From Lytechinus pictus (Eukaryota), in assembly GCF_037042905.1 (NCBI RefSeq), contig NC_087247.1, positions 5,952,001-6,016,000 of the forward strand: a stretch of DNA of 64,000 bases, written 5' to 3'. How positions within the stretch are numbered: the stretch's first letter is position 1; the number at the start of each line of letters is the position of its first letter. The position numbers were made by a program, and so were the translations under genes. The notes beneath the pieces were generated by a model. It was given only the letters and a program-made list of their open reading frames with translations, did not search any database and was not told the origin of the DNA. Below, in pieces: positions 4,236-27,099 of the stretch.

Positions 4236-5728
4236 ATATATATGAATATGTGAATATATAAATATTTAATTATGTAAATATTCCACACACCAGACTCAAC
4301 ATACTCAATCTCCTTGGATGTCAGCTGGCAGCTATTAGTGTCTTCTGTATTTACGTAAGTATATCTAAGTTTCCTTCTTCTTCTTTCCTGTCTCTTTATC
4401 CAACTCACTTTCTGACTTTCTTCTGCGTTCTTACTTTCTATGTTTTTCACTTTTTGTTCACATGAAGAGCCCACAAACTCTTCATATATATATGCATACA
4501 TCCTACGAAAGGGCGAAGTCTATGAATGGGTTTATTCCGTCATAATACACATATAGACGTAAAGACGAAGGTAGAGGGCGTTAAGGCGCATTACGAACAT
4601 TGAAAGAAGACAAAAAAATTTGCTTTAAACACAGATGTAGAGAAATATATATATATATATATATTTATATATACATAAATATATATACATTTATTTATAT
4701 TTACATAATACATATGTGAATACATATGACATCATTATCTGCACCTGCAGATATGCAACTTTGAATTAAAGAAATGAGAATTAAGATACATATTTTTGGG
4801 GTTTGCACTCATCTTATTATAATTTTATTACAATTTATAAAGATATGAATTAAGTTTTGTGCAAAAGGAATATTGGATTTTTTTATAAAAAGAGAAACTA
4901 AATAAGACAAACGATGGAGAGGGGAGCTGGATCGGGGGGGGGGGAGTAGATTGAGAGAGAGAGAGAGGGGGGTAGCATCATATTCATGAACTTAAAATGC
5001 AGTGATACATAACATAAGAGAATGAAGAAGTCTGAAAATGAGTAATATTTATAAAGTAAAATAATTGTCAAAAGATATAAAATATCATGTAAAATGGCGG
5101 CAATATGTTGAAAGGAAATGCAAAACAAAATTAACTTTATACGCGATTGAGTTCTACTTATATTGAATTCCTCTTCTTCAAAATAAATCATTCATGAATA
5201 TAAGAAAGATATATTATGTAAAAATTAAATCAATTCATAAGATTATTCAAAATAAATCATTAAAGCAAAATCAATCGATTATAATCAATCAGCCTCGGGA
5301 ATCAGCCAAATTAATCAATCACTCATGCACTCACCCTGCCAACATATATGACCAATGGCATGCACATTAATAACAAGCTTATTCAATTGAAAGAAAATAG
5401 AAACAGGCCTCCATTTGACCATAATACCAATCCAACAATAATTAGTCAGTCTCAGACTGCGACTGTCGACTGAATAAAATTGATACACATCTGTAATGTA
5501 AATAAAACTCAATAGACAATAAACGTAAACACACACTGAAACGTGAGTGAATGCTTTTTACTCTCTAGGAGCCCGATTCATTGTCATTGATGACATTAGA
5601 CCAAACGTTAGATCTAGTAACGTTACTTACATGGCATCGATTGCGCTAGTAAGTTAGTCTTGAGGACTCCATGATGATGTCTTTTAAAACAAATTTGACA
5701 TATACTTCTGACATATATGTCAAATTTG

Positions 5729-7321
5729 GGCAAAATCGTGATATAGGCCCCGCTCGAGTAAAACTTGTAATCGATCATACCTCAATATATAGGTTGCTAA
5801 CTTCAGCTCACTATATATACTCGTGATATAGGCCCCGCTGCTGTGTTGAATGGCTCAGAATGTCCGTTCGCGGGGCCTGTTTCACGAGTATAATACTATA
5901 ATCGTTATATAGGCCCCGCACTACGGCACTTCAGACACTCCAACACAGTAGCGGGGCCTGTATCACGAGTATATTATTAAGCTTGCATCCTAAGATAATC
6001 GCGAAACTGGCCCCGTAAGCCCCAGGACCACGTTATTTTCCATGATATAACAGTGCAAGGGGCCTCGATAACGAGTATACTAATAGCTAGCCGTCATCCG
6101 AGCCCCACGCACGTGCGAATGCTGGGGAAAAGCGCATTGGACGGGGCCAGTTTCGTGATTATCTTAGGATGCAAACTTAATAATATACTCGTGATACAGG
6201 CCCCGCTACTGTGTTGGAGTGTCTGAAGTGCCGTAGTGCGGGGCCTATATAACGATTATAGTATTATACTCGTGAAACAGGCCCCGCGAACGGACATTCT
6301 GAGCCATTCAACACAGCAGCGGGGCCTATATCACGAGTATATATAGTGAGCTGAAGTTAGCAACCTAGATATTGAGGTATGATCGATTACAATTTTTTTC
6401 TCGAGCGGGGCCTATATCACGAGTATGCCAATAATATACTCGTGATACAGGCCCCGCTACTGTGTTGGAGTGTCTGAAGTGCCGTAGTGCGGGGCCTATA
6501 TAACGATTATAGTATTATACTCGTGAAACAGGCCCCGCGAACGGACATTCTGAGCCATTCAACACAGCAGCGGGGCCTATATCACGAGTATGATGGGGTG
6601 TCCAAACTTCGCGCACTTTTCAAAAATATTCATCAGGCTTAATTTTGTTCACAAAATATTCATAATTTATACAAAAACAATTCAAGAAATAGTTACCACA
6701 TTGACGGCAAGATCGTGAACTATAAAATCATGGACGAAAATGTAAAGTAGGTCAAGGGGTTTCGCCGGTATCGCGATCTCAAAATTCTATTCCGATCGGC
6801 GAATGCGGGCTGTGCTGGAAAACCGTTCAGAAAAGTGTGACCTAACTTCGCGCACCAAATCTTTTGTGGAGATTTAAACAAAAACTCAAGTTCAAAAAGT
6901 GAAAAATTAAATCAGATTGATGGCAAAATGCTATGGAATCGGTTAGTACCACATTTAACTCACATTTTTGATGATTTCTGCTTGCAAAATGGTGATATCG
7001 TGATGCTTGTGATTTCTTCAAAACGGGCGCTAGCGGTGACAAATTTGCCGATCTTTTGCCAATATTTTCATGAATACTGAACTCATCCTAAAAAAAATTT
7101 CATTATACGGTAATTTTAGGTCGCTTTTCACGTTGATGATGTCAGATTTTAAGGATATTGGCTAGTTTTTTAGATAAGGACCGTCCGCGAAGTATGGACA
7201 CGCGCGAAGTTTGGACACACTGCCATATAATAGTGAGCTGAAGTTAGCAACCTAGAATAGATATTGAGGTATGATCGATTACAATTTTTTTCTCGAGCGG
7301 GGCCTATATCACGAGTATGCC
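5729..7321. mobile_element. Non-autonomous Merlin-family element (internal-deletion derivative of 7341-26504)
   Basis: It has the same termini GGCAAAATCGTGATATAGG...CCTATATCACGAGTATGCC and an 8-bp TSD CAAATTTG (5721-5728, 7322-7329). The left arm is fused to the right arm at 6016/6017. The right-end segment is duplicated (6179-6429 and 6430-7321). Confidence 0.9.
6591..7225. mobile_element. MITE nested in the small Merlin element
   Basis: Inverted GTGTCCAAACTTCGCGC near both ends. It interrupts the host motif CACGAGTATATATAGTGAGC, probably at a TA. Confidence 0.8.
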
Positions 7322-7340
7322 CAAATTTGTTTTAAAAGAC

Positions 7341-9394
7341 GGCAAAATCGTGATATAGGCCCCGCTCGAGAAACACTTGTAATCGATCACATACCTCAAT
7401 ATCTAGGTTGCTAACTTCAGCTCACTATATATACTCGTGATATAGGCCCCGCTGCTGTGTTGAATGGCTTAGGATGTCCGTTCGCGGGGCCTGTTTCACG
7501 AGTATAATATTATAACCGTTATATAGGCCCCGCACTACCGCACTTCAGACACTCCAACACAGTAGCGGGGCCTCTATCACGAGTATATATTAAGGCTTGC
7601 ATCCTAAGATAGTCGCGAAACCGGCCCCGTCCAATGCGCTTGTCCCAGCATTCGCACGTGTGTGGGGCTCGGATGACGGCTATTAGTATACTCGTTATCG
7701 AGGCCCCTTGCACTGTTATATCATGGAAAATAGCGTGGTCGTGGGGCTTGTTTCCCCGGTGAGAGATATCATGGGCGGCGCTGTAGGGGGCCGGGGGGGG
7801 GGGGGGGTGGGGGGGGGCTCCAATTTATTTTTCAAATAAACAAGGAGAGAGAATAATAGAATAATAAACATTTATTTGTGGATTTATTTATATATTGATG
7901 TAGTTATTTATTTATCAATCTATTTGAATTGATTAATTGATGATCGTTCGTTTTTATTCTTTTTATAAGTGGAAGTTCATTTATTTATATATTTATCAAT
8001 TTGCCCCTTGCACTGTTATATCATGGAAAATAGCGTGGTCGTGGGGCTTGTTTCCCCGGTGAGAGATATCATGGGCGGCGCTGTAGGGGGCCGGGGGGGG
8101 GGCTCCAATTTATTTTTCAAATAAACAAGGAGAGAGAATAATAGAATAATAAACATTTATTTGTGGATTTATTTATATATTGATGTAGTTATTTATTTAT
8201 CAATCTATTTGAATTGATTAATTGATGATCGTTCGTTTTTATTCTTTTTATAAGTGGAAGTTCATTTATTTATTTATCAATTTATTTTGATTAATTAATA
8301 TATTTATATTCATTCATTATTCGTTCAATTTTTTTGTTTTCATTTTTTTTCTTTTGTGATATAGAGAGTCAGAGGTATCATTCGTTTTTAATTCTTTTTA
8401 TGTGTGAAAGTTCATTTATTTATTCATTTATTTATTATCTATTTAATGATTTAGTTATTATATTTTCAATTTTATTTGTTTGTTATCTGAGTGGCGTGCG
8501 TAGGCCTAGGTCTTATGTTGATACAGGGTCGTACATGTCATTTATTTTTCATTTAGTTTTATTCATTCTGTAAGTTATAGTGGCTATACAAAATGATGAC
8601 GGCAACCATTGTAAAGCTTAGAATATTACTCTTTCATCTGGTATAACTCAGAAGATTCCTCGATCATTCAGGCATGAATGACTTTAACAATTTGAAGAAA
8701 GTATAGATATATAATCTGAATTGAAAAATAATAATTTACCTTTTTTTAATTAGGAAATGAATTAGTCGTAGTTGAATGGTGTTATCATTATTTTCGTTAC
8801 ATAAATGGAATTTATATTATTTTTGTTTAAGGTCATATCCACCCCAGAAAAATGTTGATTTGAATAAATATAGAAAAATCAAACTAGCATAACGCTGGAA
8901 AATTTCATCAAAATCCGATGTAAAATAAGAAAGTTGTGATATTTTAAAGTTCGCTTATTTTTCACAAAACAGTGATATGCACAATCATTTGCATGCAAAT
9001 GATACAGTCGATGATGTCCCTCGCAATTTCTTTTGTTTTTTCTTTTCTTTTTACAGAATTGACAATAAGGGCCCACGTGAATGAACCATATAACAATTCT
9101 AATTTCCGCATGTTCAGGAAAGAATTAATCATTGTTTCACTTTACAACAAGGAGAAAATTGGAAAACACTAAAGAAATAGTGACTGGATGGCGTCATCAG
9201 TTTCCTCATTTGCATACTGACCTGGATGTGCATATATAACTATTATTTTAAATTAAACTAAACTTCAAAATGTCATAACTTTCTTATTTTACATCCGATT
9301 TTGATGGAATGTTTAGCGTTATGATAATTGGATTTTTGTCCTTTTTAGCGTTATGATAATTGGATTTTTCTCTTTTTATTCAAATCAACTTTTT
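7341..9394 (+). repeat. Left long TIR of the giant Merlin element
   Basis: Reverse-complement match to 24046-26504. Contains about 8 TCGTGATATAGGCCCCGC-like motifs in both orientations and an internal duplication (7703-8002 vs 8003-8285). Confidence 0.88.
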
Positions 9395-9417
9395 GTTGGG
9401 GTGGACTTGTCCATTAA
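8827..9417. mobile_element. TTAA-flanked Kolobok-like MITE embedded in the left TIR
   Basis: TTAA-GGTCATATCCACCCC...GGGGTGGACTTGTCCA-TTAA with long imperfect inverted repeats. A mirror copy lies at 24046-24582. Confidence 0.75.
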
Positions 9418-10739
9418 ATTCAACAATTGATGTATTTGTTTTTATTAAATTTTTTGTTTTATTTGATGTTAGGCCAACCATTATCGTTAATTATTTTCTC
9501 TTTTTTNNNNNNNNNNNNNNNNNNNNNNNNNNNNNNNNNNNNNNNNNNNNNNNNNNNNNNNNNNNNNNNNNNNNNNNNNNNNNNNNNNNNNNNNNNNNNN
9601 NNNNNNNNNNNNNNNNNNNNNNNNNNNNNNNNNNNNNNNNNATGCATTACTATTTCAAGTTCTCCGTATTGTTTCACTTATTGATTTCCTGGTTTATTCA
9701 TATATTCATTTATTCGTTCATATTTGCACTGTTTTGGGGGGAAAAATGTGGTGTATTTATTGACACGATATGCCTACCCTTAAAGGGGTAGTTTACCATG
9801 ACGTAGTTGGCGAAAATTAAAGCAGAAACATTAAAAAAATATTCTTAAAGGTTTGATGAAAATACGTCAAGGAATAAAATAATAATAAAATTATTTTTGA
9901 TGACACAGACGAGAATATTTTCCAAAATTTGTGCAGACCTATGATACGTACAAGTAATGAATGTTTATGAGTGCAATGGACAGAATAATTCATGAGGTGA
10001 AAGATGAAATGATCCATTCAGATCCATTCAACGAGGCGTAGCCGAGTTGAATGGATCCTTATTTAATTATAACTATTATAAGTAATTCTGATTGTATAGT
10101 ATTATTTGTTTTAGGAACATTCATTCTTGCATGAGAAACTAGAATCGTCAGAAAATTGGAAAACAATAGTAAAGAAATATTACATTATATTTATCACTTT
10201 TCACAATACGATAAGAGATGTATAGCGTGTCAAGAGTCGCGATTGTGACTTATTTTAGTATTGGTAAATTTTTTTTTTGATTAACAGGACAGCGACCCCT
10301 TTTTTTTTTAATAGCATGCTTCATTTCTTTAGTATTATTCAGGAGCCACAGAAGGGAATGGATATAAATTTTGACAAGTAAAATCAACGAAATTTCAAGC
10401 TGTCCATATTTTTGCGTATTATTATATTATATTGTTTAGTCGATAAGTAATTTCATAGAAAAGACTGGTTCACAAATCATAAAACATAACTGCCCGCCAC
10501 CCTCCTCTCTCGGAGGTCTGAAGAGGATGTGTTAATTTAATTGACTAAACACCCCGTGCCCTACCCGGTTGTCTCGAAAGGGCGTGGCCACTATTTCCGC
10601 GAACGCAGACTGTTTTCTTAAGCCGTTATATCATATTGAAATATATTATATTATATCATATCATATCATATCATATTATATATTTGTTTATGCATAACTT
10701 TGATATTTTTATTCTTATGATAGTTTTATTAGTTTGCTC

Positions 10740-10771
10740 CATAGAGATATATATACTATTATGTCTCTATG
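10740..10771. mobile_element. 32-bp CATAGAGA...TCTCTATG remnant (P-like excision footprint)
   Basis: Inverted ends, flanked by near-identical 8-mers GTTTGCTC and GTTCGCTC. Confidence 0.6.
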
Positions 10772-11104
10772 GTTCGCTCCTTGCTGTAACTTAATTGTAT
10801 TTTAATAGCAGTATATTTGGGCTTTCTCGACCGGGGTAAAATCTTGCCAAATCATAATATTCAACTTCATGATCTATTCCTATGATATTACCAACGGGTT
10901 ATTGTTCTTAATCTTTTTTCTTCTCCCCTACAACTCCTTCTTATTGCTGAAGTTTTTTTTTCTCTTCTTTTTCTTCTTCTCCTACTTCTTCCCCCATGCA
11001 TGCACCTTCACCCTTTTTTCTTATTTTCTTTTTATTCTTCCTCTCCTCCTCTTCTTCTCCATCTTCTGCTTCCCCTCCTTTTCCTTCTCCTTCCTCACCC
11101 TCTT

Positions 11105-12889
11105 CAGCGGTGGATTCAGCTTTCGCCCGAAAAAAAAAGGGGGGGGGGGCGGCGGCGATTTTCTTTTCCAGCTGACATATTTTTCCAAAAAGTCGCTCAA
11201 AGTTATACTAATGAAAAACAACATGATATAATCTCATAAGCTCTATTTCCAAAATGCGAGCGCGAAGCGCGAGCAAATTTTGTTGAAAATTTCTTGTATT
11301 TTGTCCCGAAAATTGAATACTAATATTCTGGGTAATGTTCGTGATTCTGAACAAGATGCTATATAACTAGAAAATAACTGCGAGCGCGATTACGTTCTGG
11401 CCTGATGGAAAAGGGACCTGTTACTGAGGACTGTTTGCAGTTAGCCATGAAGACGATACATATTTTTTAAGTTAAAAAATGCGAGCGCGAACTTAAAAAT
11501 TAAAACATTCCGACCTTAAAAAAGTGGACATTCTTTGCACTTTTTTTTGTACATTTTTGTTTGGGTATATAAGTAAACAATTGATGCAAGGGAGAAATTT
11601 TAGATATCGAGACCTAAAAAACGGGAAACGCTATTCTTGTTTTTAAATCATGAAAGGATGGATAATTGGGTATCTTCCTACATCAATAATGCGAGCACGG
11701 AGCACAAAGCGCGAGCATAAAATTTTTGAAAATCTAAATCTGAAACTACTAATTTAAGTATGATTTGAATAAAGAACGAGCTGTGTATCTCATTTAACCT
11801 GCGTCTGCGTGTTTTTATACCTATAATCTTGGCATTCTGAATACATTTATTAATCACGAAAATCACTAATGCGAGCGCGAGGTGAAAATATTTGATATTC
11901 CAATCTGAAAAGGGTCAATTTAAGCACTATGTAGGGAAATTTTGATGTGGATCGCACTTAATAAAGGATGCAAGTGCGACCTATAATATTTTTATTACTA
12001 TTTTGACCGAGGATCGGGACATTCTAAAGACATAAATTGTCATCATGTGAAAATGATGACTATCTTCCTTTCTCTCGACCTAAGCGCGAGATAAAACTGG
12101 TTGATATTCATTTCTAAAAATGGGGACAATTTTGTTATTAGGAATTAATGAAAATGTTTTCTTATCAATCTCATTTGTCCTAGTGAGATCGTGAAAATTA
12201 TTTATATTAAGACCTAAAAACTGCACATTTTAAGCATTTGTGTAGTTATGAATAGGATGCATGTGCTAATATATTTCGAAGAATTAATGCGAATCGCGAG
12301 CCGAAATATTTGATATTAAAACCGTCATGAAAATTGTATTTTTTGTAGTTTGTTATAGAATTAATATAGAGGTATAACTCACCAATCAAAATGCAAGCGC
12401 GCAGCGCTAGCTGATATTATTGTACGTGATATTGATATTATACGTTCTGACTATCACACATGAACAGGGATATTTTGAGAGTTTTGTGGAATATACGAAA
12501 ATAATAGGTACTTGCCAAATTAATAATACGAGCGCGCAGCGCGTGCTGAAAATCTTGATATTCAGACCATAATACGGACATTCTTGTACAAAAGACTTAT
12601 AACAATCGATTTGTAACTCAAAGCGTGAAAAATTAAGCTCCATATCAACATATTGAGCAAGATATGTATCTATCGAACAGGCAATCCGAGCTCAAAGCGC
12701 GAGCGAAAATTTTGTATGGTGACATGAAATATTTTTTTCCAAATCTTCCTGTCACCTTATTTTATTCACTCGTCAACCTCCTCTTATTCTTCCTTTTTTC
12801 CTCTTCTCTTTCCCTTTTTTCTTTAATTCCCCTTTTTTGCGGTTTTTGCTCCGCCAATAGGGAGCCAGGGGCCCCTGGATGCGCCTATG
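11105..12889. mobile_element. 1.8-kb non-autonomous TIR element with degenerate GCGAGCGCGAAGCGCGAG internal repeats
   Basis: Ends CAGCGGTGGATTCAG / CTGGATGCGCCTATG, with a 5-bp direct repeat CTCTT on both sides. It splits a CT-rich tract (10900-11104, 12890-13080). Confidence 0.65.
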
Positions 12890-13417
12890 CTCTTCTATTG
12901 TCTCTTCTTCTCCTTCTTCTGATTCTTCTTCCTATCCTTCTTCCTTATCCTCTTCTGCCTCTTCATTTTCTTCTTCGTCTTTTTCTGCTTCTTCTTATCC
13001 TTCTCTTTCTTCTTCTGCTTCTTTTTCTTATCCTTCTTCTTCTCGCCCCTTTCCTTCTCCTTTCTCAACTTCTTCAACAAAAACAAGTGAGGGAGAGAGT
13101 GTGTGTGATCAAGAGAGAGGGAGAGAAAATGTAATGAGAAATGAATCGAAAAGAATATGACAGCGACGACCCTGGCCGCTCGCACCAAAATGAGAACCGA
13201 GCTACCGGATCTCAAACATCCTTCTTCGCCCATTTAAATATCCCTCTCCCTTTAAGAGTTTCTTGAGAAAATTAGATGGAAAGTGGATTGCGTTAATGAA
13301 AGAAGAGTGTATTTTGCAGCTCTTGATTTTGTTTATATGTTAGGTGCTGCTATTAAAACATTTTTTAATAACAAATTGGTATCTTAAAGGTCGCAAATAA
13401 TAAGATCATCCCCCTTC

Positions 13418-16266
13418 AAACCTGGAGATCTCAAACAGAGCGATTAGTGGATTGTTTATTTATATTATATTCATATCTTTACAATATCTTGTATTTATAC
13501 AGTAAGGTTTATAAGTCAATAGTCCAGTCTATCATTCTTATTATATTTGGGGGACTATTTCTGGTGATTCCTCTCAATATTTAATCAATCGTGAATTATC
13601 ACTTCACTGTTCATTAATATTTTCGGGGGGGGGGGGGGGTTACGGCCACTGTTTCTCATGTTGAGGGATTCATTTCCTTACTTTTTATTAGGGGTGCATA
13701 GAGGTTTATCCCTGTCTTTATATTTTTATTATTTATTTATATTCTTTTATTAGAACAAATTGTCAATTATATATTTTATTTGAAAATCGCATCTGTTGAT
13801 ACTTTTTTTTTTTAGTTTAAAAATCAATTGCTTAACCATAATAATTCATTGACGAAAATAGTGCTTTTTATTAGGGGTGTTTTGAGGTTTATCCCTGTCT
13901 TTATATTTTCATTATTAATTTTTTTTCTTTTATTAGAACAAATTGCCAATTATGTATTTTATTTGAAAATCGCATCTGTTGATACTGTATTTTTTCTGTG
14001 TTAAAAATCAATTGCCTAACCATAATTATTCATTGACGAAAATAGTGCAGGGTGTTTTTCAATTTGTTTAAGAGGGAAATAGAGACATATCTATTCAGTT
14101 TCTTTCTTGGTAATTTGGTGGCTCTGAAAAGAGCCGTTGTGTTTAGAGGCGAGATTAAATCTCAAGCCAAAATGACTCATGAGAGTCATTCGAAGTCGCT
14201 GTCGTCGCCTTCGCCCCAGGTGAAGGCGCTCCTTGAGTAGTTGTTTGCCGTGGCTGGTTGACGGCTGCTTGGACCGGCACCCTCCTCTTCACCTCCGCTT
14301 CCTTCCTTCCTAATCTCGATGTAGTCAGCTGGGCAGATGACCCTCCTCGCTGGCATCTTTTTCCGCTTCCTCGGCATGTTGGATGTCATGTCGGGCCTGT
14401 TCGTCGGCGTGGAGGTAGCTGCAGGGACGTCGTCGACTTCCTGGTCACCGTCGTCATCGTCGTCCTCATCGTCACTCATTCTCGAGAGCGACATGTCTGC
14501 CAAGTCTGCCTTTTCACCTGTCCACGTGTCAAAGAGAGGCGATTCGGCGTCGAGGAGGTTGGCCGTAGTCAGGGGGTAGAATCGGCGCATCAGGGCAAAG
14601 AAGGCGTCGAAGATGTTTTGCCCGGAAGTGTGGTTGCGCCAGATGACTTCGGCGAGATGCGCCTCGAAATTGCTCATGGTGGTCCCGTTGATCCGTCTGA
14701 AGTGATCCTTGGCATGCTTCCAGGCGCCCTCGATGCGGTTGGTACACACCTCCTTGATCACCCCCGTAGTCGCATGTCGGTAGCGGGCTTTGAACGTCTC
14801 TTTATGAATGACGTTGAAATGCTCGTAGCCGAGATCGTTCAGTGAGGCGTAGCCAGCCCAGCCGTCGGTCAGGATTGTCGACCCCACCTCGACGTGGCGG
14901 GTAATGATGTGGACCAGTGTGTCTTCCTTCCTATCCTCTACGGGGTAGAGAATGATTTTGTTCGTCGACCTCTCCACCATGCCGACGATCCACACCTTCA
15001 TGCCGACGTTTGGGTTGCCTTTATGGTATTTGCAACGTCTGCCGAACAGTGACTCATCTATCTCGACTTCACCAGACAGCTTCATGGGGGCGTCAGGGCT
15101 GTAGACCTCGGACACATATTGTCGAAACAGATCCCTTATGTAGTTGGCCCAGTCGACCGCCGTCTTCTTGTAGTCCAGTCCCGCCTGGGTAGCCATACAT
15201 CGGAGGGAGTTCTTCAGGAGAAAATCACGGATAAACTCCATGATGTCCTGGAAGCTGAAGTGGCTTCTCCTGAAGAATGAATTCTCCGTGATTGAGAACT
15301 CCACATCCTTGTGGACGTCGTTCTTACGGCAACGCCACCGGAACCCATGATGTTTGCCTTTGCGCTGAACCAGACGGCAGTCTCTCTGGCATCGGGGGCA
15401 CACCTTCTTCTCGCAGAGCAGCCCTTGCCCCATCATCCACTCCACCACATCTCTTGGAGGACTAAGAAACAGGCTATAGAAACTCCAAGGATTGTAAAAA
15501 TGGGAAACCCTGCATGTTGAAGGATCGACGCGCTTACGAAAGTTGCCAGCCATCTTGAAGGATACTGATGGTCAACCTCAAATTTTCACACAATTTATAC
15601 CTTTTTGGAGGACCGTATGCCTCCATCTTGTGAAACGTGTGATTGGACCCCTACTTTCCCCCCCTTTTCTGCCAGCGAAATCGACAATATGCAAATCTCG
15701 TCCGTGTGACGGTATTATGCAAATCAGGCCCGCATGTACCTGATTTAATTATTCATGACTGATACAAACATACACGGTGCGAATACAGGTGGTTCATGAC
15801 ATATGAAGCTCATAATTGACTGCTATCTTCTATTTCATCCATTTATCAAGTCATCCACTAACCACAACGACTGTTGGGATTGCAACATCAACAGATTTAA
15901 CCCGAAAATTAGTTCAAAATAAGAGACATGCCGTCCGTAGGCCTATAGGCTATATATGGACAGGTAATCTTTATGCACATTAATTGAGCCAATCGAGGGA
16001 GTAGAGGCTAGCTGCCAAACGTGGGATAGGTTAGCCCGGCCCTGAAGAAGCGATTTGCATTTTGCGCCTTCTACCCGGGTCGATGTCCCATTGGCTGATA
16101 AAATTAGTGCCTTCATCTCATGAGCACCTTGTGTATCATTACATAATGTGTGTTACCCGAAGCAGGGAAGACTTCCCTGCCCGAAGGTTGTCAACCAGGG
16201 AGATCCCCCTCGCCCGAATCAAACACACTGCCCAGCGCTGTGTAGTCTATATTCTGCAGACACTTT
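13418..16266 (-). repeat. Left arm of the central palindrome
   Basis: Reverse complement of 16635-20096. Paired ORF coordinates sum to 32883. Confidence 0.95.
14186..15553 (-). CDS. Merlin (IS1595/ISXO2-like DDE) transposase, copy 1
   Basis: 455 aa, intronless. N-terminal Cys cluster CPRC...WRC, then GEVEIDESLFG, KYHKG, WIVGMVER, GSTILTDGWAGY, EHFNVIH and TNRIEGAW (D-D-E). Acidic tail and NLS-like PRKRKK. Confidence 0.93.
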   Translation of the reverse strand: MAGNFRKRVDPSTCRVSHFYNPWSFYSLFLSPPRDVVEWMMGQGLLCEKKVCPRCQRDCRLVQRKGKHHGFRWRCRKNDVHKDVEFSITENSFFRRSHFSFQDIMEFIRDFLLKNSLRCMATQAGLDYKKTAVDWANYIRDLFRQYVSEVYSPDAPMKLSGEVEIDESLFGRRCKYHKGNPNVGMKVWIVGMVERSTNKIILYPVEDRKEDTLVHIITRHVEVGSTILTDGWAGYASLNDLGYEHFNVIHKETFKARYRHATTGVIKEVCTNRIEGAWKHAKDHFRRINGTTMSNFEAHLAEVIWRNHTSGQNIFDAFFALMRRFYPLTTANLLDAESPLFDTWTGEKADLADMSLSRMSDDEDDDDDGDQEVDDVPAATSTPTNRPDMTSNMPRKRKKMPARRVICPADYIEIRKEGSGGEEEGAGPSSRQPATANNYSRSAFTWGEGDDSDFE

Positions 16267-16602
16267 TTCTTCTGGATATCACTCATAAATAGGCACGTGA
16301 TGCTACTTCAGTATGCTCTGTNNNNNNNNNNNNNNNNNNNNNNNNNNNNNNNNNNNNNNNNNNNNNNNNNNNNNNNNNNNNNNNNNNNNNNNNNNNNNNN
16401 NNNNNNNNNNNNNNNNNNNNNNNNNNNNNNNNNNNNNNNNNNNNNNNNNNNNNNNNNNNNNNNATCATTACCTAGTAAATTGTTCCTCATCTTGGAAAGA
16501 AGCTAATGCTAATTCATATATGTGGATATATACTGAATTATAGGGCAGCATCCTTATGATCAGGTGCGTATTTAGGGGTGATTTTCAGAAGAAAATGCCA
16601 AA

Positions 16603-16635
<33 letters not shown>

Positions 16636-17119
16636 AAGTGTCTGCAGAATATAGACTACATCGTCACAGCGCTGGGCAGTGTGTTTGATTCGGGCGAGGG
16701 GGATCTCCCTGGTTGACAACCTTCGGGTAACACACATTATGTAATGATACACAAGGTGCTCATGAGATGAAGGCACTAATTTTATCAGCCAATGGGACAT
16801 CGACCCGGGTAGAAGGCGCAAAATGCAAATCGCTTCTTCAGGGCCGGGCTAACCTATCCCACGTTTGGCAGCTAGCCTCTACTCCCTCGATTGGCTCAAT
16901 TAATGTGCATAAAGATTACCTGTCCATATATAGCCTATAGGCCTACGGACGGCATGTCTCTTATTTTGAACTAATTTTCGGGTTAAATCTGTTGATGTTG
17001 CAATCCCAACAGTCGTTGTGGTTAGTGGATGACTTGATAAATGGATGAAATAGAAGATAGCAGTCAATTATGAGCTTCATATGTCATGAACCACCTGTAT
17101 TCGCACCGTGTATGTTTGT

Positions 17120-17332
17120 ATCAGTCATGAATAATTAAATCAGGTACATGCGGGCCTGATTTGCATAATACCGTCACACGGACGAGATTTGCATATTGTC
17201 GATTTCGCTGGCAGAAAAGGGGGGGAAAGTAGGGGTCCAATCACACGTTTCACAAGATGGAGGCATACGGTCCTCCAAAAAGGTATAAATTGTGTGAAAA
17301 TTTGAGGTTGACCATCAGTATCCTTCAAGATG
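17120..17332 (+). promoter_or_regulatory. Putative transposase promoter (mirrored at 15551-15763)
   Basis: Octamers ATTTGCAT at 17159 and 17187, CCAAT at 17237, TATAAAT at 17284, Inr-like TCAGT at 17315, and YY1-like CAAGATGG at 17253 and over the ATG. Confidence 0.6.
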
Positions 17333-18697
17333 GCTGGCAACTTTCGTAAGCGCGTCGATCCTTCAACATGCAGGGTTTCCCATTTTTACAATCCTTGGAG
17401 TTTCTATAGCCTGTTTCTTAGTCCTCCAAGAGATGTGGTGGAGTGGATGATGGGGCAAGGGCTGCTCTGCGAGAAGAAGGTGTGCCCCCGATGCCAGAGA
17501 GACTGCCGTCTGGTTCAGCGCAAAGGCAAACATCATGGGTTCCGGTGGCGTTGCCGTAAGAACGACGTCCACAAGGATGTGGAGTTCTCAATCACGGAGA
17601 ATTCATTCTTCAGGAGAAGCCACTTCAGCTTCCAGGACATCATGGAGTTTATCCGTGATTTTCTCCTGAAGAACTCCCTCCGATGTATGGCTACCCAGGC
17701 GGGACTGGACTACAAGAAGACGGCGGTCGACTGGGCCAACTACATAAGGGATCTGTTTCGACAATATGTGTCCGAGGTCTACAGCCCTGACGCCCCCATG
17801 AAGCTGTCTGGTGAAGTCGAGATAGATGAGTCACTGTTCGGCAGACGTTGCAAATACCATAAAGGCAACCCAAACGTCGGCATGAAGGTGTGGATCGTCG
17901 GCATGGTGGAGAGGTCGACGAACAAAATCATTCTCTACCCCGTAGAGGATAGGAAGGAAGACACACTGGTCCACATCATTACCCGCCACGTCGAGGTGGG
18001 GTCGACAATCCTGACCGACGGCTGGGCTGGCTACGCCTCACTGAACGATCTCGGCTACGAGCATTTCAACGTCATTCATAAAGAGACGTTCAAAGCCCGC
18101 TACCGACATGCGACTACGGGGGTGATCAAGGAGGTGTGTACCAACCGCATCGAGGGCGCCTGGAAGCATGCCAAGGATCACTTCAGACGGATCAACGGGA
18201 CCACCATGAGCAATTTCGAGGCGCATCTCGCCGAAGTCATCTGGCGCAACCACACTTCCGGGCAAAACATCTTCGACGCCTTCTTTGCCCTGATGCGCCG
18301 ATTCTACCCCCTGACTACGGCCAACCTCCTCGACGCCGAATCGCCTCTCTTTGACACGTGGACAGGTGAAAAGGCAGACTTGGCAGACATGTCGCTCTCG
18401 AGAATGAGTGACGATGAGGACGACGATGACGACGGTGACCAGGAAGTCGACGACGTCCCTGCAGCTACCTCCACGCCGACGAACAGGCCCGACATGACAT
18501 CCAACATGCCGAGGAAGCGGAAAAAGATGCCAGCGAGGAGGGTCATCTGCCCAGCTGACTACATCGAGATTAGGAAGGAAGGAAGCGGAGGTGAAGAGGA
18601 GGGTGCCGGTCCAAGCAGCCGTCAACCAGCCACGGCAAACAACTACTCAAGGAGCGCCTTCACCTGGGGCGAAGGCGACGACAGCGACTTCGAATGA
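17330..18697 (+). CDS. Merlin (IS1595/ISXO2-like DDE) transposase, copy 2
   Basis: Protein identical to 14186-15553 in the ORF track, with the same DDE motifs. Confidence 0.93.
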   Translation: MAGNFRKRVDPSTCRVSHFYNPWSFYSLFLSPPRDVVEWMMGQGLLCEKKVCPRCQRDCRLVQRKGKHHGFRWRCRKNDVHKDVEFSITENSFFRRSHFSFQDIMEFIRDFLLKNSLRCMATQAGLDYKKTAVDWANYIRDLFRQYVSEVYSPDAPMKLSGEVEIDESLFGRRCKYHKGNPNVGMKVWIVGMVERSTNKIILYPVEDRKEDTLVHIITRHVEVGSTILTDGWAGYASLNDLGYEHFNVIHKETFKARYRHATTGVIKEVCTNRIEGAWKHAKDHFRRINGTTMSNFEAHLAEVIWRNHTSGQNIFDAFFALMRRFYPLTTANLLDAESPLFDTWTGEKADLADMSLSRMSDDEDDDDDGDQEVDDVPAATSTPTNRPDMTSNMPRKRKKMPARRVICPADYIEIRKEGSGGEEEGAGPSSRQPATANNYSRSAFTWGEGDDSDFE

Positions 18698-19423
18698 CTC
18701 TCATGAGTCATTTTGGCTTGAGATTTAATCTCGCCTCTAAACACAACGGCTCTTTTCAGAGCCACCAAATTACCAAGAAAGAAACTGAATAGATATGTCT
18801 CTATTTCCCTCTTAAACAAATTGAAAAACACCCTGCACTATTTTCGTCAATGAATAATTATGGTTAGGCAATTGATTTTTAACACAGAAAAAATACAGTA
18901 TCAACAGATGCGATTTTCAAATAAAATACATAATTGGCAATTTGTTCTAATAAAAGAAAAAAAATTAATAATGAAAATATAAAGACAGGGATAAACCTCA
19001 AAACACCCCTAATAAAAAGCACTATTTTCGTCAATGAATTATTATGGTTAAGCAATTGATTTTTAAACTAGAAAAAAAAATAGTATCAACAGATGCGATT
19101 TTCAAATAAAATATATAATTGACAATTTGTTCTAATAAAAGAATATAAATAAATAATAAAAATATAAAGACAGGGATAAACCTCTATGCACCCCTAATAA
19201 AAAGTAAGGAAATGAATCCCTCAACATGAGAAACAGTGGCCGTAATCCCCCCCCCCCCCCACCCGAAAATATTAATGAACAGTGAAGTGATAATTCACGA
19301 TTGATTAAATATTGAGAGAAATCACCCGAAATAGTCCCCCAAATATAATAAGAATGACAGACTGGACTTAGAAAGTGGATAATGGAAAGAATCTCGTATA
19401 AACATATTGACTAATAAACCTTT

Positions 19424-20024
19424 GGCTGAAAATAGTATGATTTATATGCCTACAAATAAAGAAAATCAGATAAACAAAACACTGAACATTTGATCAAAAT
19501 CGGACAAGGAATAACAAAGTTATGGCATTTTGAAAATTTGCATTATTCCGATGAAACAATTATGGGTATGTCATCATGAATATTCAATGATTATGAGCAA
19601 ATTGGTGATGTCATATCCCTACTTGTTCTTCTGTATTATGAAAATTAGGTTGATTCAAAAAAATTTCTACGAAGAACTTAAAACATTGGATTGACAACTG
19701 ATTTAGTGCATTAGATATTCATTGCTGCAACTTATTTCATTATAAAGGAGACACATTATTCACACATATATTATGAAAAAATGAAACAATGATTTCGTGT
19801 AATAACATAAGAAAAAGGAAAGTGGGGATGTGACATCATCAGCCCACCTAATGAATATTCATGATGACGTACGTATAATCATTTTCACAAAATATTGCTT
19901 TACTAAAAATTCAATAACTTTTTTATCTGTAATACGATTTTGATGAATTTTTCAGCATTTTGCTATATGAATTTTACTCTATTTATTCACATATAAATAT
20001 TTTCAACCGGGAGTATCCTTTTAA
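19424..20024. mobile_element. Kolobok-like MITE (left end truncated), present in the right inner arm only
   Basis: Same family as 42560-43152 (GGCTGAAAAT..., GTGGGGATGTGACATCATCAGCCCACC). Ends GGAGTATCCTT-TTAA. Absent from the left arm at about 13500. Confidence 0.75.
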
Positions 20025-22573
20025 TGTATAAATACAAGAGATATGGAAATATATATAAACAATTCACCAATCGCTCCGTTTTAAATCTCCAGGTTTTCGG
20101 GGAGGGGGTTGATGCGACAGCCCCATGAAATCTTGAAATGTAATCTTTTTCCTTTTTTTTTTTCAATTTTTCTAAACAAAACCCACAGCACCCCCTACTT
20201 AAAAATCGTTCCCAGTGCCCTGCTTGATCGTTTATCGAACATGATTTGCATGGATATTTGTATTAATTTCTTTGTATTTGAGATTTACATAATTCTTGGT
20301 AGATAATCAGATCATGCTTCATAACTTTTTGGTTTGTATAATAATATTTCTTGAAGACGAAATGATGGGATTGTTGGGTTTAAGTGACATTTGTTACCTT
20401 GTATGGTATATATCAGTTTCGTCTAATAGTTTCTGGTACTTTCTGGAGGGTAACCCCCAATTACCTTTATTTGATTAGAATTATATTTAGGACATCCATC
20501 CAAAATGATATTGCTTGGTCATGTTTGAGTCATCTGTAAATATATATATTTTACATTGATTTATATGTAGTTTGATTACCACTAACATAGTATCCTGTTG
20601 CTAGGCGAAATCCAACAATTCTACAGGCGCTGTTGGTCATGCAGTTACATCATACTAGTTGGCAGTGACGTCACGAATCATGGCACACGCCACAGAAGTC
20701 ATGAATAATTAATGAGGAGTGATCGATCCGGGAAGTCAGCAATTCAGTTTTATTGTCTAAGGATTAACCCTGTTCACACTGAAACAACGTCTTATTTAGT
20801 TTTAGTTACACTTTATTTGGGAAGTACTAGGGTCTATTCATACTATAAAGTCTTAATCTAATTTAATTTTTAATCTGATTTAAATGTATTCCGTATACTT
20901 GCATCTTAAGTTAGATCATTTTTTTGGTAATTCATTATTATCCCAGGATATTGTTTTATAATTTTCCATCTAGATAATACTTAATCAATTTGTCAATTTA
21001 TTTAAACGTATAAGTCAACAATTAACTCAAATTATACAAATTTGTCACTATACACAGTTTTGAAGTCTCTCCAATCATCTGAATTTTATTTGCCCGATGA
21101 CTTAAACTGCAATCTCTTATACTACTTTTCTCCACATTACTTTCCATTAATACTCATCAGCGTGATTTCATTAATCTTGATCAATACGTTTGAGTGTTTT
21201 CCATGTTATATACAGTATTGACTTCAATATTGTATTTGCATACCCATGATACCATGTACATGTATGATTTATATATGCCTTTGTTTTTTCACTTTCCATT
21301 ACATCCCTCTTCTTTCATAGTACTCTCCCTACACCTTCAACTCCTTTTCCTGTCTATACATGCCTATACCACCCCCACTTATTTTGCATTGGGGGGGGGG
21401 GGGGGACAAAGCAAAAAAGAGGCTTATGTCGAAAGTGATGGGCATTTTGGTGCAAACGGATTTTTCATCTCGAGATTATTCTGCGTGAAGTGAAGTATGT
21501 GTGTTTTGTAGTATAATGAAGTTGAGCAAAGCCATTTTAAAGTGATTCTGATTGAAAAGATATGTAATAAGGCTCATCCGCGAGCGAGCGGGGCAGCGGT
21601 TTTGAAATAAATTCAAATCTGAGGTTGTAAAACTCGCTTTTTTGGCCTATTATATAGAGCACTATCTGTTAAAAGGGCATCCTTGCGAGACGTTGCAAGG
21701 GCGAAACGCAAGCTCAAACTTTGTTGTCACGCATTTTGGTTAAGAAGTTCGATATTCTCTAATCATATATTTCCATTCTCATACTTAAATTAGTCAAAAG
21801 GTATTCTGCTCATTTATGCAACGAATGTCCAGTTAAGATCAATTGTGAATGTCACTTTCACTTGCCCAGTAACCTGCACAATCAAAGTACTAAATGGGTA
21901 ATTTGTTTTTCTGTTCCAATCATGAAGAAGCGAAAACGGAAATCAGCCCCTTAGTTTGTTTTTTTCAAAACACAAAAACGAAATCACAACGAGAAAAACT
22001 TGTTGAACAAGATGCCCCCCCCCCCCTCTCTCTCTCACTCCTACATGTCAGCAGCTAGTGCTTAAATCATACCCTTATTGTCTCGATATATAATTTTATT
22101 ATCAACAAAATTCATCTCGAACTTCGATCGCATTCGCATCCTATTTGCAAGTGTGAAAAATTCAGCTCGTGCTCCTCTTTCATATCCTGGTCATGCGTCA
22201 CTGTAAAGTCCTTTTCATATTTTCAGTTCAGTAATTAGAATATTAAATAAACTTTTATTGTTTAGGGTTACAAAGAGAGCTTAGTGTGCTCCATTCATAG
22301 CTCGTAACACATGTATTATAAAAAAAAAACAGTTAGCGTTCTCGTTTAGTTCGTCCGTATAGGCATGGTAGGCCTATCTTGTTGGTAAAAATTAAAGTAC
22401 AATGTACATAAACTTCCATCCTAAGGTTATCACAACCCCCCCCCCCCCAAAAAAAAAAAAAAAAAAAAAAAAAACACCTCTTCCTCTTTGAGTGGCCGAC
22501 CAGGGATTTCATGAAAAGCAATGTGTCCAACCGGCCTGTACCCCCGCCCAGCCCCTTTAAAAGTACTGGACCT

Positions 22574-22746
22574 GGTGGGTGTTTCATAAAGCTGTTCGTA
22601 AGTTAAGAGCTACTTTAAGAACGACTGGTGATCCTTTCTTGTGGTAAATGGCATATTCATTGGCGATGGTTTGGCACATAAGAAAGGTTCACCAGTCGTT
22701 CTTAAAGTTGCTCTTAACTTACGAACAGCTTTATGAAACGGCACCC
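22574..22746. mobile_element. Short Harbinger-like MITE
   Basis: Inverted GTTTCATAAAGCTGTTCGTAAGTTAAGAGC arms. Confidence 0.75.
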
Positions 22747-23829
22747 CGTACCTATGTGTATATTTTTTTCCTGACGCATTCAACCAGACAGACCTATGCG
22801 CCACCAACTGTCTTCTCAAATTTGTGCAGCCCCCCCCTCCCCCTCCCCCGCTACGAAATCTCGGATCTATAAGGGGACACATTAAACTCCTGAAATAAAA
22901 TATCACAGAAAAGGAAAAAGTATAATAATTCGTGCATGATAATAAATCATAAGAACACATTGAGACACTTTTTCAGAAATTATTAAATCTTTTAATGAAA
23001 ACGGGATATCGGGGCGAGGGTGTATGAATTAGAAAATAATTGAACACCATAATAGGCGAAGAAAAAAATGCAATATTTGGATGGTGATTTAAGAAATATT
23101 AAGTTAATTATGGAGTATAGATATCCCTCAAGCCATAATGAAATTGACCAAAAGAAAATTCATAAACCTTCCCCGAATGAATATGCCTATTCGTTTTCTT
23201 TTCTGAACTTAAATGGATGAAAAGTGAGGAAGGGGGGGGGGGGGCATTATTGAAGGAATGAAAAAAAAAATTGATAATACTCAAGAAGCCTGATGAATGA
23301 TTCAATATTGAATAAGAGAAGAAAATCGATTTGATGATTTGTGATTGCAAATAGATGGATGATACATGAAGGAATAAATGGATTCATTCGCAGCATTACG
23401 TCAAGTGAAAGATTGACAAGAAGTCAAGAACTACATAATTTAATTATTAATGACACCTCCCTGCAAAAAAAAATAATCAAAATAAAATGCTGAATAAAAC
23501 GAGGTTATCAAATAACAAGCAAATATAAATTACGATGGATAATGGAACAAAAATATATATAAATGCCTAACGTTACATAGAAAACACTCCCCGAAAATAG
23601 CAAATGAATGAATCATTCACAGATTTATCAAAAGTTATTCAGAAAGCAGATCATTAAAGCAAAATATTAAAAACACGAGGGCGGCATCAGGTTGCGAGGG
23701 GCCAGGTTGATTTTTCTCTGAAAACTGAAGGATAACATGCCTAAAACAAAGTCGCTCACTCATAATATGGATCCTACCTCCATTGTCATGCAGAGTTTTT
23801 ATTCTCACTTCTTTATTATCCCCGTTGTT

Positions 23830-24045
23830 TTTTGGAAAATAAATTGGAGCCCCCCCCCCCCCCCGGCCCCCTACAGTGCCGCGCATGATATCTCTCACTG
23901 GGGAAACAAGCCCCACGACCATGTTATTTTCCATGATATAATAGTGTAAGGGGCCTCGATAACGATTATAATTGCCGTCATCCGACCGAGCCCCACACAC
24001 GTGCGAATGCTGGGACAAGCGCATTGGACGGGACCAATTTCGCGA
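23830..24045 (-). repeat. Extra internal fragment of the Merlin TIR
   Basis: Similar to 26030-26233 and the reverse complement of about 7612-7830. Directly abuts the truncated MITE copy at 24046. Confidence 0.85.
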
Positions 24046-26504
24046 CAAAAAGTTGATTTGAATAAAAAGAGAAAAATCAAACTATCGTAACGCTAAAAAT
24101 TCCATCAAAATCCGATGTAAAATAAGAAAGTTATGACATTTTGAAGTTTAGTTTGATTTAAAATAATAGTTATATATGCACATCCAGGTCAGTATGCAAA
24201 TGAGGAAACTGATGACGCCATCCAGTCACTATTTCTTTAGTATTTTCCAATTTTCTCCTCATTGTCAAGTGAAACAATAATTAATTCCTCCCTGAACATG
24301 TGGAAATTAGAATTGTTATATGGTTCATTCACGTGGGCCCTTATTGTCAATTCTGTAAAAAGGAAAGAAAAAACAAAGAAATTGCGAGGGACATCATCAA
24401 CTGTATCATTTGCATGCAAATGGGTTGTGCATATCACTGTTTTGTGAAAAATAAGCGAAACTTTAAAATATCACAACTTTCTTATTTTACATCGGGTTTT
24501 GATGAAATTTCCAGTGTTATGCTAGTTTGATTTTTCTATATTTATTCAAATCAACATTTTTCTGGGGTGGATATGACCTTAAACAAAAATAATATAAATT
24601 CCTTTTATGTAACGAAAATAATGATAACACCATTCAACTACGACTAATTCGTTTCCTAATTAAAAAAAGGTAAATGATTATTTTTCAATTCAGATTATAT
24701 ATCTGTACTTTCTTCAAATTGTTAAAGTCATTCATGCCTGAATGATCGAGGAATCTTCTGAGTTATACCAGATGAAAGAGTAGATATTCTAAGCTTTACA
24801 GTGATTGCCGTCATCATTTTGTATAGCCACTATAACTTACAGAATGAATAAAACTAAATGAAAACTAAATGAAATGTACGACCCTGTATCAACATAAGAC
24901 CTAAGCCTACGCACACCTCTCAGAATTGTAACAAACAAATACAATTGAAAATATAATAACTAAATAAATAAAAAGATAATAAATAAATGAATAAATAAAT
25001 GGACTTCCACACATAAAAAGAATTAAAAACGAATGATACCTCTGACTCTCTATATCACAAAAGAAAAAAGAACTGAAAACAAATGAAATAAATGAATGAA
25101 TAAATCAATCAATTGAAATAGATTGATAAATAAATTAAATGAACTTCCACATATAAAAAAGAATAAAAAACGAATGATACCTCTGACTCTCTATATCACA
25201 AAAGAATAAAAAAACTGAAAACAAATAAATAGAATGAATAAATATGAATACATTAATTAATCAATTGAAATAGATTGATAAATAAATAAATGAACTTCCA
25301 CTCATAAAAAGAATAAAAAACGAATGATACCTCTGACTCTGAAAACAAATGAAATAAATGAATGAATAAATCAATCAATTAAAATAGATTGATAAATAAA
25401 TTAAATGAACTTCCACATATAAAAAAGAATAAAAAACGAATGATACCTCTGACTCTCTATATCACAAAAGAATAAAAAAACTGAAAACAAATAAATAGAA
25501 TGAATAAATATGAATACATTAATTAATCAATTGAAATAGATTGATAAATAAATAAATGAACTTCCACTCATAAAAAGAATAAAAAACGAATGATACCTCT
25601 GACTCTCTATATCACAAAAGAAAAAAAGAACTGAAAACAAATGAAATAAATGAATGAATAAATCAATCAATTGAAATAGATTGATAAATAAATTAAATGA
25701 ACTTCCACTCATAAAAAGAATAAAAAACGAATGATACCTCTGATTTTCTATATCACAAAAGAAAACAAATTGAAAACAAATAAATTTAATGAATAATGAA
25801 TAAATATATATTAATTAATCAATTGAAATAGATTGATGAATAAATAAATGAACTTCCACTCATAAAAAAATAAAAAAACAAATGATACTCGACTCTCTAA
25901 ATGACAAAAGAAAATTAAACGATTAATGAATAAATTTAAATACATCAATTAATCAATTCAAATATATTGATAAATAAATAACGGCCTAAATAACTATATC
26001 AATATATAAAAACGGCAAATAAATTTAAAAAATAAATTGGAGCCCCCCCCCCCCCTCCCCTACAGCGCCGCCCATGATATCTCTCACCGGGGAAACAAGC
26101 CCCACGACCACGCTATTTTCCATGATATAACAGTGCAAGGGGCCTCGATAACGAGTATACTAATAGCCGTCATCCGAGCCCCACACACGTGCGAATGCTG
26201 GGACAAGCGCGTTGGACGGGGCCGATTTCGCGACTATCTTAGGATGCAACCTTAATATATACTCGTGATATAGGCCCCGCTACTGTGTTGGAGTGTCTGA
26301 AGTGCGGTAGTGCGGGGCCTATATAACGGTTATAGTATTATACTCGTGAAACAGGCCCCGCGAACGGACATTCTAAGCCATTCAACACAGCAGCGGGGCC
26401 TATATCACGAGTATATATAGTGAGCTGAAGTTAGCAACCTAGATATTGAGGTATGTGATCGATTACAATTTTTTCTCGAGCGGGGCCTATATCACGAGTA
26501 TGCC
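24046..26504 (-). repeat. Right long TIR of the giant Merlin element
   Basis: Mirror of 7341-9394, longer because of an expanded AT-rich array. Confidence 0.88.
24990..25960. repeat. AT-rich tandem array, about 7 units of 115-151 bp, inside the right TIR
   Basis: ACTTCCAC...GAATGATACCTCTGACTCT recurs at about 25003, 25143, 25294, 25409, 25560, 25701 and 25852. Confidence 0.85.
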
Positions 26505-27099
26505 TAAAAGACATCATCATGGAGTCCTCAAGACTACTAGTAAGTAGTAATAATTGCCACTCATTCTTCGCCTGGCTTCGGATTAGAGAGAACCGACATC
26601 AAATTGAATGTATCGGACTAAGTCTAACTTAAAAAATTAATTACCCTCTAGCAAACGGTTCATCATCCTTTTTCTTATGACCAGGTGTACCTCTCTTCTT
26701 CATAAACTGTATGAAAAGCTTGTATTCTTCTTCGAAAGCGTTAAGTACCGGATTTTTGTCCCCTGTGTAATATTTAGAAGAAGGTTGGGTGACTGCTTTT
26801 GCAGCTTTATGCTGCAGCATCATCGCCATCTTGATACAAAGTTGGGTTGCTAGGTTGCGTTCATTCTTAAAGTTGCGATTTCTTTCCACAAGGAAGAAAA
26901 ATGTGAGCATAAAACATTTCTATTGCATCTGAAATTCATCATACCGATTGGAATTTATTACCAAAATTTAAAGTTTTAATGTTGAATGAAATGATTTCAC
27001 ATTTTTTATCAATAATATATCTGAAATATCTTGGAGAAACAAAATATTCTCCCTGCAAGTCATAATGGACTCTCCTCGAATAATAGCATTATGCCGCGC

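Follow-up and report, generated by a model that had tools for sequence, protein, structure and literature searches.

In a 64,000-nucleotide window of the sea urchin Lytechinus pictus genome (contig NC_087247.1, positions 5,952,001 to 6,016,000; coordinates below are those of the window), the stretch 7341-26504 on the plus strand is one insertion of an echinoid cut-and-paste transposon of the Merlin superfamily (IS1595-like DDE), 19,164 bp in length and with a single pair of ends. The element contains two identical transposase genes, which can be read as the arms of an old internal inverted duplication whose core has since been homogenised, and each gene is followed by a predicted histone-type 3' signal. 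We assign these three parts, taken together, a probability of roughly 70%.

The extent of the element was defined by its ends, its target-site duplication (TSD), and the restored host site. As the first-pass annotation of this DNA had reported, an exact 8-bp TSD, TAAAAGAC, is located on both sides (7333-7340 and 26505-26512). The element starts with GGCAAAATCGTG at the 5' side, and its 3' end is the reverse complement of GGCATACTCGTG; the Merlin-type 5'-GG is present at both ends (GGCAAAATCG... and GGCATACTCG...), giving the overall GGC...GCC configuration proposed before. The same 30-nt terminus was detected 106 times in the genome (51 forward and 55 reverse matches, nearly all mismatch-free), and a reversed-pattern control gave 0. 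The insertion interrupts a 109-bp hairpin miniature inverted-repeat transposable element (MITE) of another family, the left part of which is found at 5655-5728 and the rest at 7330-7340 and 26513-26536. Between these parts, a second, non-autonomous Merlin-family member (5729-7321, plus strand, 1.6 kb) is inserted, composed of a 701-bp MITE (5729-6429) and a partial duplicate, with its own TSD, CAAATTTG, at 5721-5728 and 7322-7329. In silico removal of 7341-26504 and 5729-7321, each with one copy of its TSD, yielded a hairpin of 109 bp whose 50-bp arms match perfectly around a 9-nt loop. Both TSDs are validated by this result, because removal of both elements restores a perfect hairpin. Intact copies of the host hairpin were found elsewhere in the genome (e.g., C20:18588978-18589096), and its arm is the terminus of another repeat family, the copies of which are 96-100% alike and include uninterrupted back-to-back versions. 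Since the hairpin is pristine and the copies of its family are so similar, the host site is young.

The two transposase open reading frames (ORFs) are located at 14186-15553 on the minus strand and 17330-18697 on the plus strand; both encode the same 455 residues, and both are transcribed outward from the palindrome centre, in agreement with the earlier description of a central inverted repeat with two identical outward-facing DDE ORFs. The Pfam profile DDE_Tnp_IS1595 (PF12762) matched residues 158-306 with an E value of 7e-23, which, with the 8-bp TSD and the GG-starting terminal inverted repeats (TIRs), bears out the assignment to Merlin. An alignment of 14 homologs shows the catalytic residues D166, D230, and E275 to be conserved, and the protein can be aligned over its full length with homologs from sea urchins and bivalves; among the named homologs, that of Strongylocentrotus purpuratus is the closest (52% identity by BLASTP and 57% in the multiple alignment). 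For an N-terminal zinc finger no significant Pfam match was obtained; the Cys-rich pattern is conserved nonetheless. Exact-protein look-ups for the window transposase and its S. purpuratus homolog returned nothing on record. In DNA contigs of another individual, two further transposase variants were detected, each ~96% identical (17507-18485, one run), which indicates that other coding copies exist in the species. In those contigs, 18 of the 25 differences within residues 59-212 were synonymous and 7 non-synonymous, and the differences in the acidic tail were mostly non-synonymous. The excess of synonymous differences in residues 59-212 indicates that the transposase lineage is under purifying selection. 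By sequence, both ORFs look intact, and the element is predicted to be autonomous.

We compared the stretch from 5 to 29 kb with itself, and the nested inverted structure described in the first-pass annotation was confirmed. In the centre, blastn pairs 13521-16266 with 16635-19368, and 13803-16162 is 100% identical to 16721-19080. A finer alignment extended the arms to ~2.9 kb: the left arm occupies 13385-16321 (minus strand), and the right arm occupies 16540-19424 and 20019-20119 (plus strand), interrupted by a ~594-bp MITE at 19425-20018 that is absent from the left arm and 83-85% identical to its own family. From the axis outward, 10 mismatches were observed in the innermost 52 nt, followed by a core without any substitution over 2.68 kb (only 24- and 6-nt indels and homopolymer length changes), and 14 mismatches in the outermost ~170 nt. 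The edges thus show 24 mismatches in ~219 aligned nt versus 0 in the 2.68-kb core. The right arm alone contains a 41-nt microsatellite and a 37-nt insertion in addition to the MITE. Beyond 13385 and 20119, the flanks are unrelated, with local alignments no better than those of shuffled sequence. Because both edges have diverged and one arm only has acquired a MITE, the palindrome is old. It is largely shown by these comparisons that the twin genes are the arms of an old internal inverted duplication with a subsequently homogenised core. Given the age of the duplication, the similarity of the arms is far higher than would be expected, as in gene-converting palindromes, and we infer that the core was homogenised recently, most simply by arm-to-arm gene conversion.

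Three other arrangements of the centre were considered and rejected. The whole element is not a single complete palindrome disguised by nested repeats, as homology stops at 13385 and 20119 after removal of the MITE. Nor is the palindrome an independent nested element: the 8 bp flanking 13521 and 19368 differ, and the arm ends have no GG start. A single copy with an inversion polymorphism was discarded because the axis-proximal sequences differ between the two sides.

The TIRs at the outer ends are long. The left TIR (7341-9347, plus strand) contains five copies of a 17-mer, AT-rich tandem repeats, and a nested MITE at 8826-9418; in the right TIR (24063-26504, minus strand), the 17-mer copies lie within 26264-26496. 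When up to two mismatches were allowed, the 17-mer, CGTGATATAGGCCCCGC, was found five times per end, the left copies being within 7349-7581, and no copy was present between 7582 and 26263. The TIRs measure 2.0 kb (left) and 2.4 kb (right), close to the ~2.0 and ~2.5 kb estimated before, with identities of 97% in the terminal 465 bp and 93.5% in the inner 1.1 kb. The copy number of the AT-rich tandem repeats is unequal between them. The extra length of the right TIR comes from 24047-25178, which duplicates 8228-9347 in inverted orientation. This segment is missing from the right arms of three 7-kb relatives, and by this comparison the inner ~1.1 kb of the right TIR is an inverted duplication private to the 19-kb copy. 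Long TIRs with internal tandem repeats place the element among foldback-type transposons; in the 7-kb relatives, the TIRs are ~1.1-1.5 kb.

Between the TIRs and the central palindrome are spacers of ~4 kb each, non-homologous to one another. They hold other repeats, as had been noted: an old high-copy repeat in the left spacer (11215-12890, 67-75% identical to its relatives), the MITE at 19425-20018, and a 555-bp dispersed repeat in the right spacer (20130-20685), which is also present in the 7-kb relatives in inverted orientation at another position. The earlier statement that the spacers are loaded with other MITEs does not extend to 9348-9864 and 21724-24046, which are the family backbone common to the 7-kb relatives. 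These relatives share 7341-9864 and 21724-26504 with the window element, with 9864 joined directly to 21724. From this junction, they lack the 11.9-kb interior (9865-21723), which holds both transposase genes in the window element, and so have no transposase genes there. We also considered the 11.9-kb interior as an insertion into a 7-kb element and rejected this, since no clean TSD was seen around it.

We examined the family of the element in the 812-Mb assembly by means of the 30-nt terminus. The matches formed 39 inward-facing pairs, 33 of them 5.5-10.8 kb apart, three small (0.7-2.9 kb), and three large; the large pairs are the window element, one of 20.9 kb on C21, and one of 29.8 kb on C5. 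The two ends differ consistently at positions 5-7 (AAAAT versus ATACT). Three 7-kb relatives each have their own 8-bp TSD, the TSDs of relatives including CTGTAGTG and CATTGAGA. Between subfamilies, the terminal ~500 bp are 93-95% conserved and the interiors 82-87%, a pattern that would be expected of transposase-binding ends. No transposase with more than 82% identity was found elsewhere in the assembly, the next best matches being fragments with 70-82% identity, and none of the other 38 paired-end members contains a transposase gene. Accordingly, the search for further ~19-kb pairs with two inverted transposases, suggested in the first-pass annotation, gave none. These results indicate that the 19-kb element is the only transposase-encoding member, in this assembly, of a family of ~50 elements.

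In the two other large pairs (C21:8273133-8294017 and C5:20563189-20593014), no transposase match was detected between the paired termini; these could be giant non-autonomous members or unrelated neighbouring ends.

Merlin elements related to the window element were also compared. An L. variegatus element, whose transposase is 61% identical, is 9.1 kb long and has 557-bp TIRs starting with GGCATAATCGTGATATAG and one gene. The sequence of this start counts in favour of the ends of the window element being cognate to its transposase. Two other Merlin families of the L. pictus genome (6.6 and 9.8 kb) have 0.8-1.6-kb TIRs with tandem repeats and one gene each. Given these three cases, long foldback-like TIRs are the norm in sea-urchin Merlins. 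The TIR length had been regarded as exceptional, and this view did not survive the comparison, as the sea-urchin relatives also have TIRs of 0.56-1.6 kb with tandem repeats.

We then weighed whether the twin-transposase palindrome is the normal heritable design of a Merlin lineage that always has two outward-facing genes. This is unlikely, though by a small margin the most probable of the alternatives. In its favour, one TSD encloses everything; divergence is higher at the palindrome edges than in the young host hairpin, as would be expected if the palindrome had travelled with the element; and a distant relative in another eukaryote also has near-identical inverted copies. The latter, however, are separate complete elements with their own ends. 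Moreover, no second copy of the twin-gene form was found in the 812 Mb, the nearest relatives (the L. variegatus element and the two other families of this genome) have one gene, and 38 of the 38 other paired-end members have none. Because the relatives have one gene, the palindrome is best regarded as an inverted duplication within a conventional one-gene element, and since it is found in one copy only, the window element represents a rearranged individual and not a demonstrated architecture. No description of a dual-transposase palindromic Merlin was found in the literature, in agreement with the first-pass annotation.

A second alternative, slightly less probable still, is that the central palindrome is an assembly artefact (an inverted haplotig, a chimeric foldback read, or an inversion heterozygote stitched over a gap) and that only one transposase copy exists. 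The assembly contains two gaps in the element. Gap 1 (9507-9641, 135 N, non-coding) is flanked on both sides by sequence collinear with the three 7-kb relatives (L041-L043), which have 130-160 bp there, and the join is supported by this collinearity. Gap 2 (16322-16463) coincides exactly with the axis of the palindrome. An artefact is favoured by this position, by the short contig that separates the gaps (6.7 kb, 9642-16321), and by the 100% identity of the core, as well as by the poor read coverage of the locus, no public run containing more than 14% of the sampled words. By contrast, the contigs place the left spacer 3' of one transposase copy and the right spacer 3' of the other, and the axis-proximal sequences next to the two copies are also different. 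With unlike neighbours on both sides, neither a single copy nor a simple inversion heterozygote nor an artefact from a foldback read can explain the assembly. Structured indels, a microsatellite, and a nested MITE also distinguish the arms, and homology to the relatives ties each contig, at its outer end, to the correct arm of the element. Furthermore, two haplotypes of a polymorphic species are not expected to be identical over 2.4 kb and yet 8-19% different at the edges; for comparison, contigs of another individual differ by ~4%. Neither gap touches the ORFs, the nearest ORF ends being 769 and 867 bp away. The 55 nt preceding gap 2 pair at ~80% with 16540-16593, and the 76 nt at 16464-16539 have no left partner; from this pairing, the partner of 16464-16539 and the palindrome axis lie inside the N run.

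Finally, that two complete head-to-head Merlins move by their outer ends as an IS10/Tn10-like composite transposon is highly improbable, despite the two inverted transposase copies and the relation of the superfamily to bacterial IS1595, because neither palindrome arm has its own termini: copies of the terminal 17-mer are confined to the 250 bp next to each outer end, with none between 9 and 24 kb, no GG termini or TSD are found at the arm borders, and single 7-kb relatives match the left backbone with one half and the right backbone with the other.

We next considered whether the 19-kb form moved as a unit. The internal repeats are older than the host hairpin, being 67-75% and 83-85% identical to their own families. 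Because the hairpin is pristine, its family is 96-100% alike, and the internal repeats are much older, the element very probably arrived at the site as a large unit. If the 50 hairpin pairs had diverged as much as the palindrome edges (24/219), they should contain ~5.5 mismatches; 0 were seen. On these few sites, we lean slightly towards the view that the palindrome predates the last transposition and that the twin-gene form itself moved. Insertion as a single unit, as claimed in the first-pass annotation, is therefore upheld insofar as one TSD pair encloses all parts, there are no inner ends, and the host site is young; that the palindrome was already on board is only marginally favoured.

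Downstream of each transposase ORF, a candidate histone-type 3' signal was detected, composed of a stem-loop, ACCA, 6 nt, and CAAGAAAGA (14096-14140, minus strand, for the left gene; 18743-18787, plus strand, for the right gene). In both window copies, the Rfam model RF00032 gave a sense-strand match of 40.1 bits (gathering score, 34) that begins 45 nt downstream of the stop codon. The module comprises a 6-bp GGCTCT/AGAGCC stem, a 4-nt U-Y-U-N loop, ACCA, and, 6 nt on, the purine-rich CAAGAAAGA, which we take to be the sea-urchin downstream element that pairs with U7 small nuclear RNA (snRNA). RF00032 also matched in a paralog on C8 (66% identical; L050:9033-9077, minus strand; 35.9 bits) and in the L. 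variegatus element (L049:11322-11366, plus strand; 35.0 bits). ACCA-N6-CAAGAAAGA is common to all three, whereas the rest of the 3' untranslated region (UTR) differs from that of the window, and the loop of the C8 paralog and the L. variegatus element is TCTA, unlike that of the window. These two share a near-identical C-terminal coding sequence and 3' UTR. In addition, a 42-44-nt piece downstream of the window ORF has 95-98% matches, covering CAAGAAAGA, at dozens of sites spaced by ~7.4 kb on unplaced contigs. As these contigs are full of RF00032 matches, the ~7.4-kb units are tandem histone repeats. The module of the C8 paralog resembles dispersed histone stem-loops at 85-90%.

Retention of the signal across two transposase lineages and two species argues for function. 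Histone pre-mRNA is cleaved between the stem-loop, bound by SLBP, and the downstream element, bound by the U7 small nuclear ribonucleoprotein (snRNP), and is not polyadenylated (PMC1635294, PMC12305476); histone mRNAs are described as the sole non-polyadenylated mRNAs (PMC12305476). No report linking a histone 3' signal to a transposase was found in the literature. Each window gene carries the predicted stem-loop and downstream element instead of an obvious polyadenylation route, and we consider the chances even that they are functional. Somewhat short of even, and put forward tentatively, is the wider proposal that this Merlin lineage took over a histone 3' signal, that its message would be non-polyadenylated and made in S phase and early cleavage, and that the only coding copy in the genome also keeps a spare gene in a travelling, gene-converting palindrome.

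Several points weigh against the overall reading. The axis of the palindrome coincides with gap 2, which no public run bridges, and this calls for caution in annotation. Assembly polishing could have contributed to the perfect identity of the core. The dating by edge divergence uses ~220 nt of AT-rich sequence and assumes that the hairpin arms are not self-corrected. There is one copy only, so that mobility, and the age of the palindrome relative to the insertion, are deductions. The histone-type signal is a prediction, and no histone stem-loop was found in more distant Merlin loci (Diadema antillarum, Diadema setosum, two further assemblies, one Logan contig, and the other families of this genome). 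Sequencing reads were aligned to 16464-19600, including three RNA-seq runs of ~1.9 Gb each for which poly(A) selection is not on record. No RNA-seq read fell on the transposase ORF, and the RNA reads within this stretch fell solely on the MITE part (19404-19600). Because the library selection method is not on record, the lack of reads on the ORF is uninformative. Of the giant foldback-type autonomous element announced in the first-pass annotation, the ends, the foldback-type TIRs, the intact ORFs, and the DDE triad are in place, and activity is a prediction.

A working model of the element can be outlined from these features. The transposase would bind the 17-mers repeated five times per end, cut at the GGC termini, and make an 8-bp staggered cut in the target; it would also serve the non-autonomous relatives of 0.7-10 kb. 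Elements with long TIRs are prone to template switching and foldback repair, either of which would have produced the inverted duplication of the gene, and arm-to-arm gene conversion would have homogenised the 2.68-kb core. A second, smaller inverted duplication would have lengthened the right TIR. The transposase mRNA would be cut by SLBP and the U7 snRNP, lack poly(A), and be produced in parallel with histone mRNAs during S phase and the rapid cleavage divisions.

Several observations concern the surroundings of the element and its more distant relatives. A foreign MITE at 6592-7225, with the ends GGGGTGTCCAAACTTCGCGC... and ...GCGCGAAGTTTGGACAC, is nested within the neighbouring Merlin MITE (5729-7321). 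Only 11 bp separate the two Merlin insertions, both within a single 109-bp hairpin (5721-7340), a clustering that hints at a preference for AT-rich or hairpin-forming targets. At C13:8939372-8943872, the closest transposase paralog (52-87% protein identity) is broken into overlapping pieces that follow one another on the same strand in scrambled order, with no family termini or stem-loop nearby. In ERZ25073293 (ctg33822l, 413016-444726), a Merlin with 40% identity is present as two dimers, each a tandem pair of the complete 3.58-kb element whose abutted ends are separated by 5-6 bp. One dimer is inverted relative to the other at a distance of 17.3 kb, and the two share 99.9% identity. Their flanking 8-mers fit two TSD-flanked insertions followed by inversion of the intervening DNA.

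The analysis names a likely autonomous source for ~50 large foldback-like sea-urchin elements and assigns their family to the Merlin superfamily, whose transposase is apparently able to move units of 7-19 kb, far above textbook size. The central palindrome would offer a small, naturally occurring example of palindrome homogenisation within a mobile element, and it could be a backup that preserves a single-copy transposase gene. If the histone-type signal is functional, the element would be the first transposon known to us to use the SLBP/U7 pathway, with a simple limit of transposase supply to replicating cells and early embryos, and its transcript would be hidden from poly(A)-selected RNA-seq. 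Cut-and-paste transposition would then be tied to DNA replication and to the pre-germline embryo.

Comparison with known systems places these features in context. In the summary of Feschotte 2004 contained in PMC8101967, the Merlin superfamily is characterised by an IS1595-type DDE transposase, an 8-9-bp TSD, and GG-starting TIRs, and described Merlins have TIRs of 24-462 bp and one transposase gene (PMC8101967). The window element agrees in its DDE_Tnp_IS1595 transposase, 8-bp TSD, and GG-starting TIRs, but it departs from this descriptive typical form in being 19 kb long, with TIRs of 2.0-2.4 kb, two genes in a palindrome, and a predicted histone-type 3' signal. Galileo of Drosophila (P superfamily) has long tandem-repeat TIRs that are extended by recruiting adjacent internal sequence as an inverted duplicate (PMC3573991). 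Unequal repeat numbers in the TIRs, TIR extension by inverted duplication, and many non-autonomous derivatives are common to both; Galileo, however, belongs to another superfamily, and the recruited part there adjoins the TIR, whereas here a separate mid-element palindrome duplicates the whole gene. Human and ape Y-chromosome palindromes are kept identical by arm-to-arm gene conversion. Like the window palindrome, they have near-identical arms with gene pairs around a unique or diverged centre, and a homogenised core versus diverged edges, but their arms are tens to hundreds of kb, compared with ~3 kb inside a mobile element here. The bacterial composite transposons Tn10 and Tn5, in which inverted IS copies flank a cargo, likewise have two inverted transposase genes in one mobile unit; the arms of the window palindrome, by contrast, have no inner ends and so are not complete elements. 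The TU foldback transposons of S. purpuratus, for which PMC4079207 cites Liebermann et al. 1983, reportedly have long modular inverted repeats and variable middle segments; in these respects they would resemble the window element. The 3' end of the window genes, finally, resembles that of replication-dependent histone mRNAs (RF00032) in its stem-loop, ACCA, CAAGAAAGA, and short 3' UTR, and differs in that the predicted signal follows a transposase ORF, not a histone ORF.

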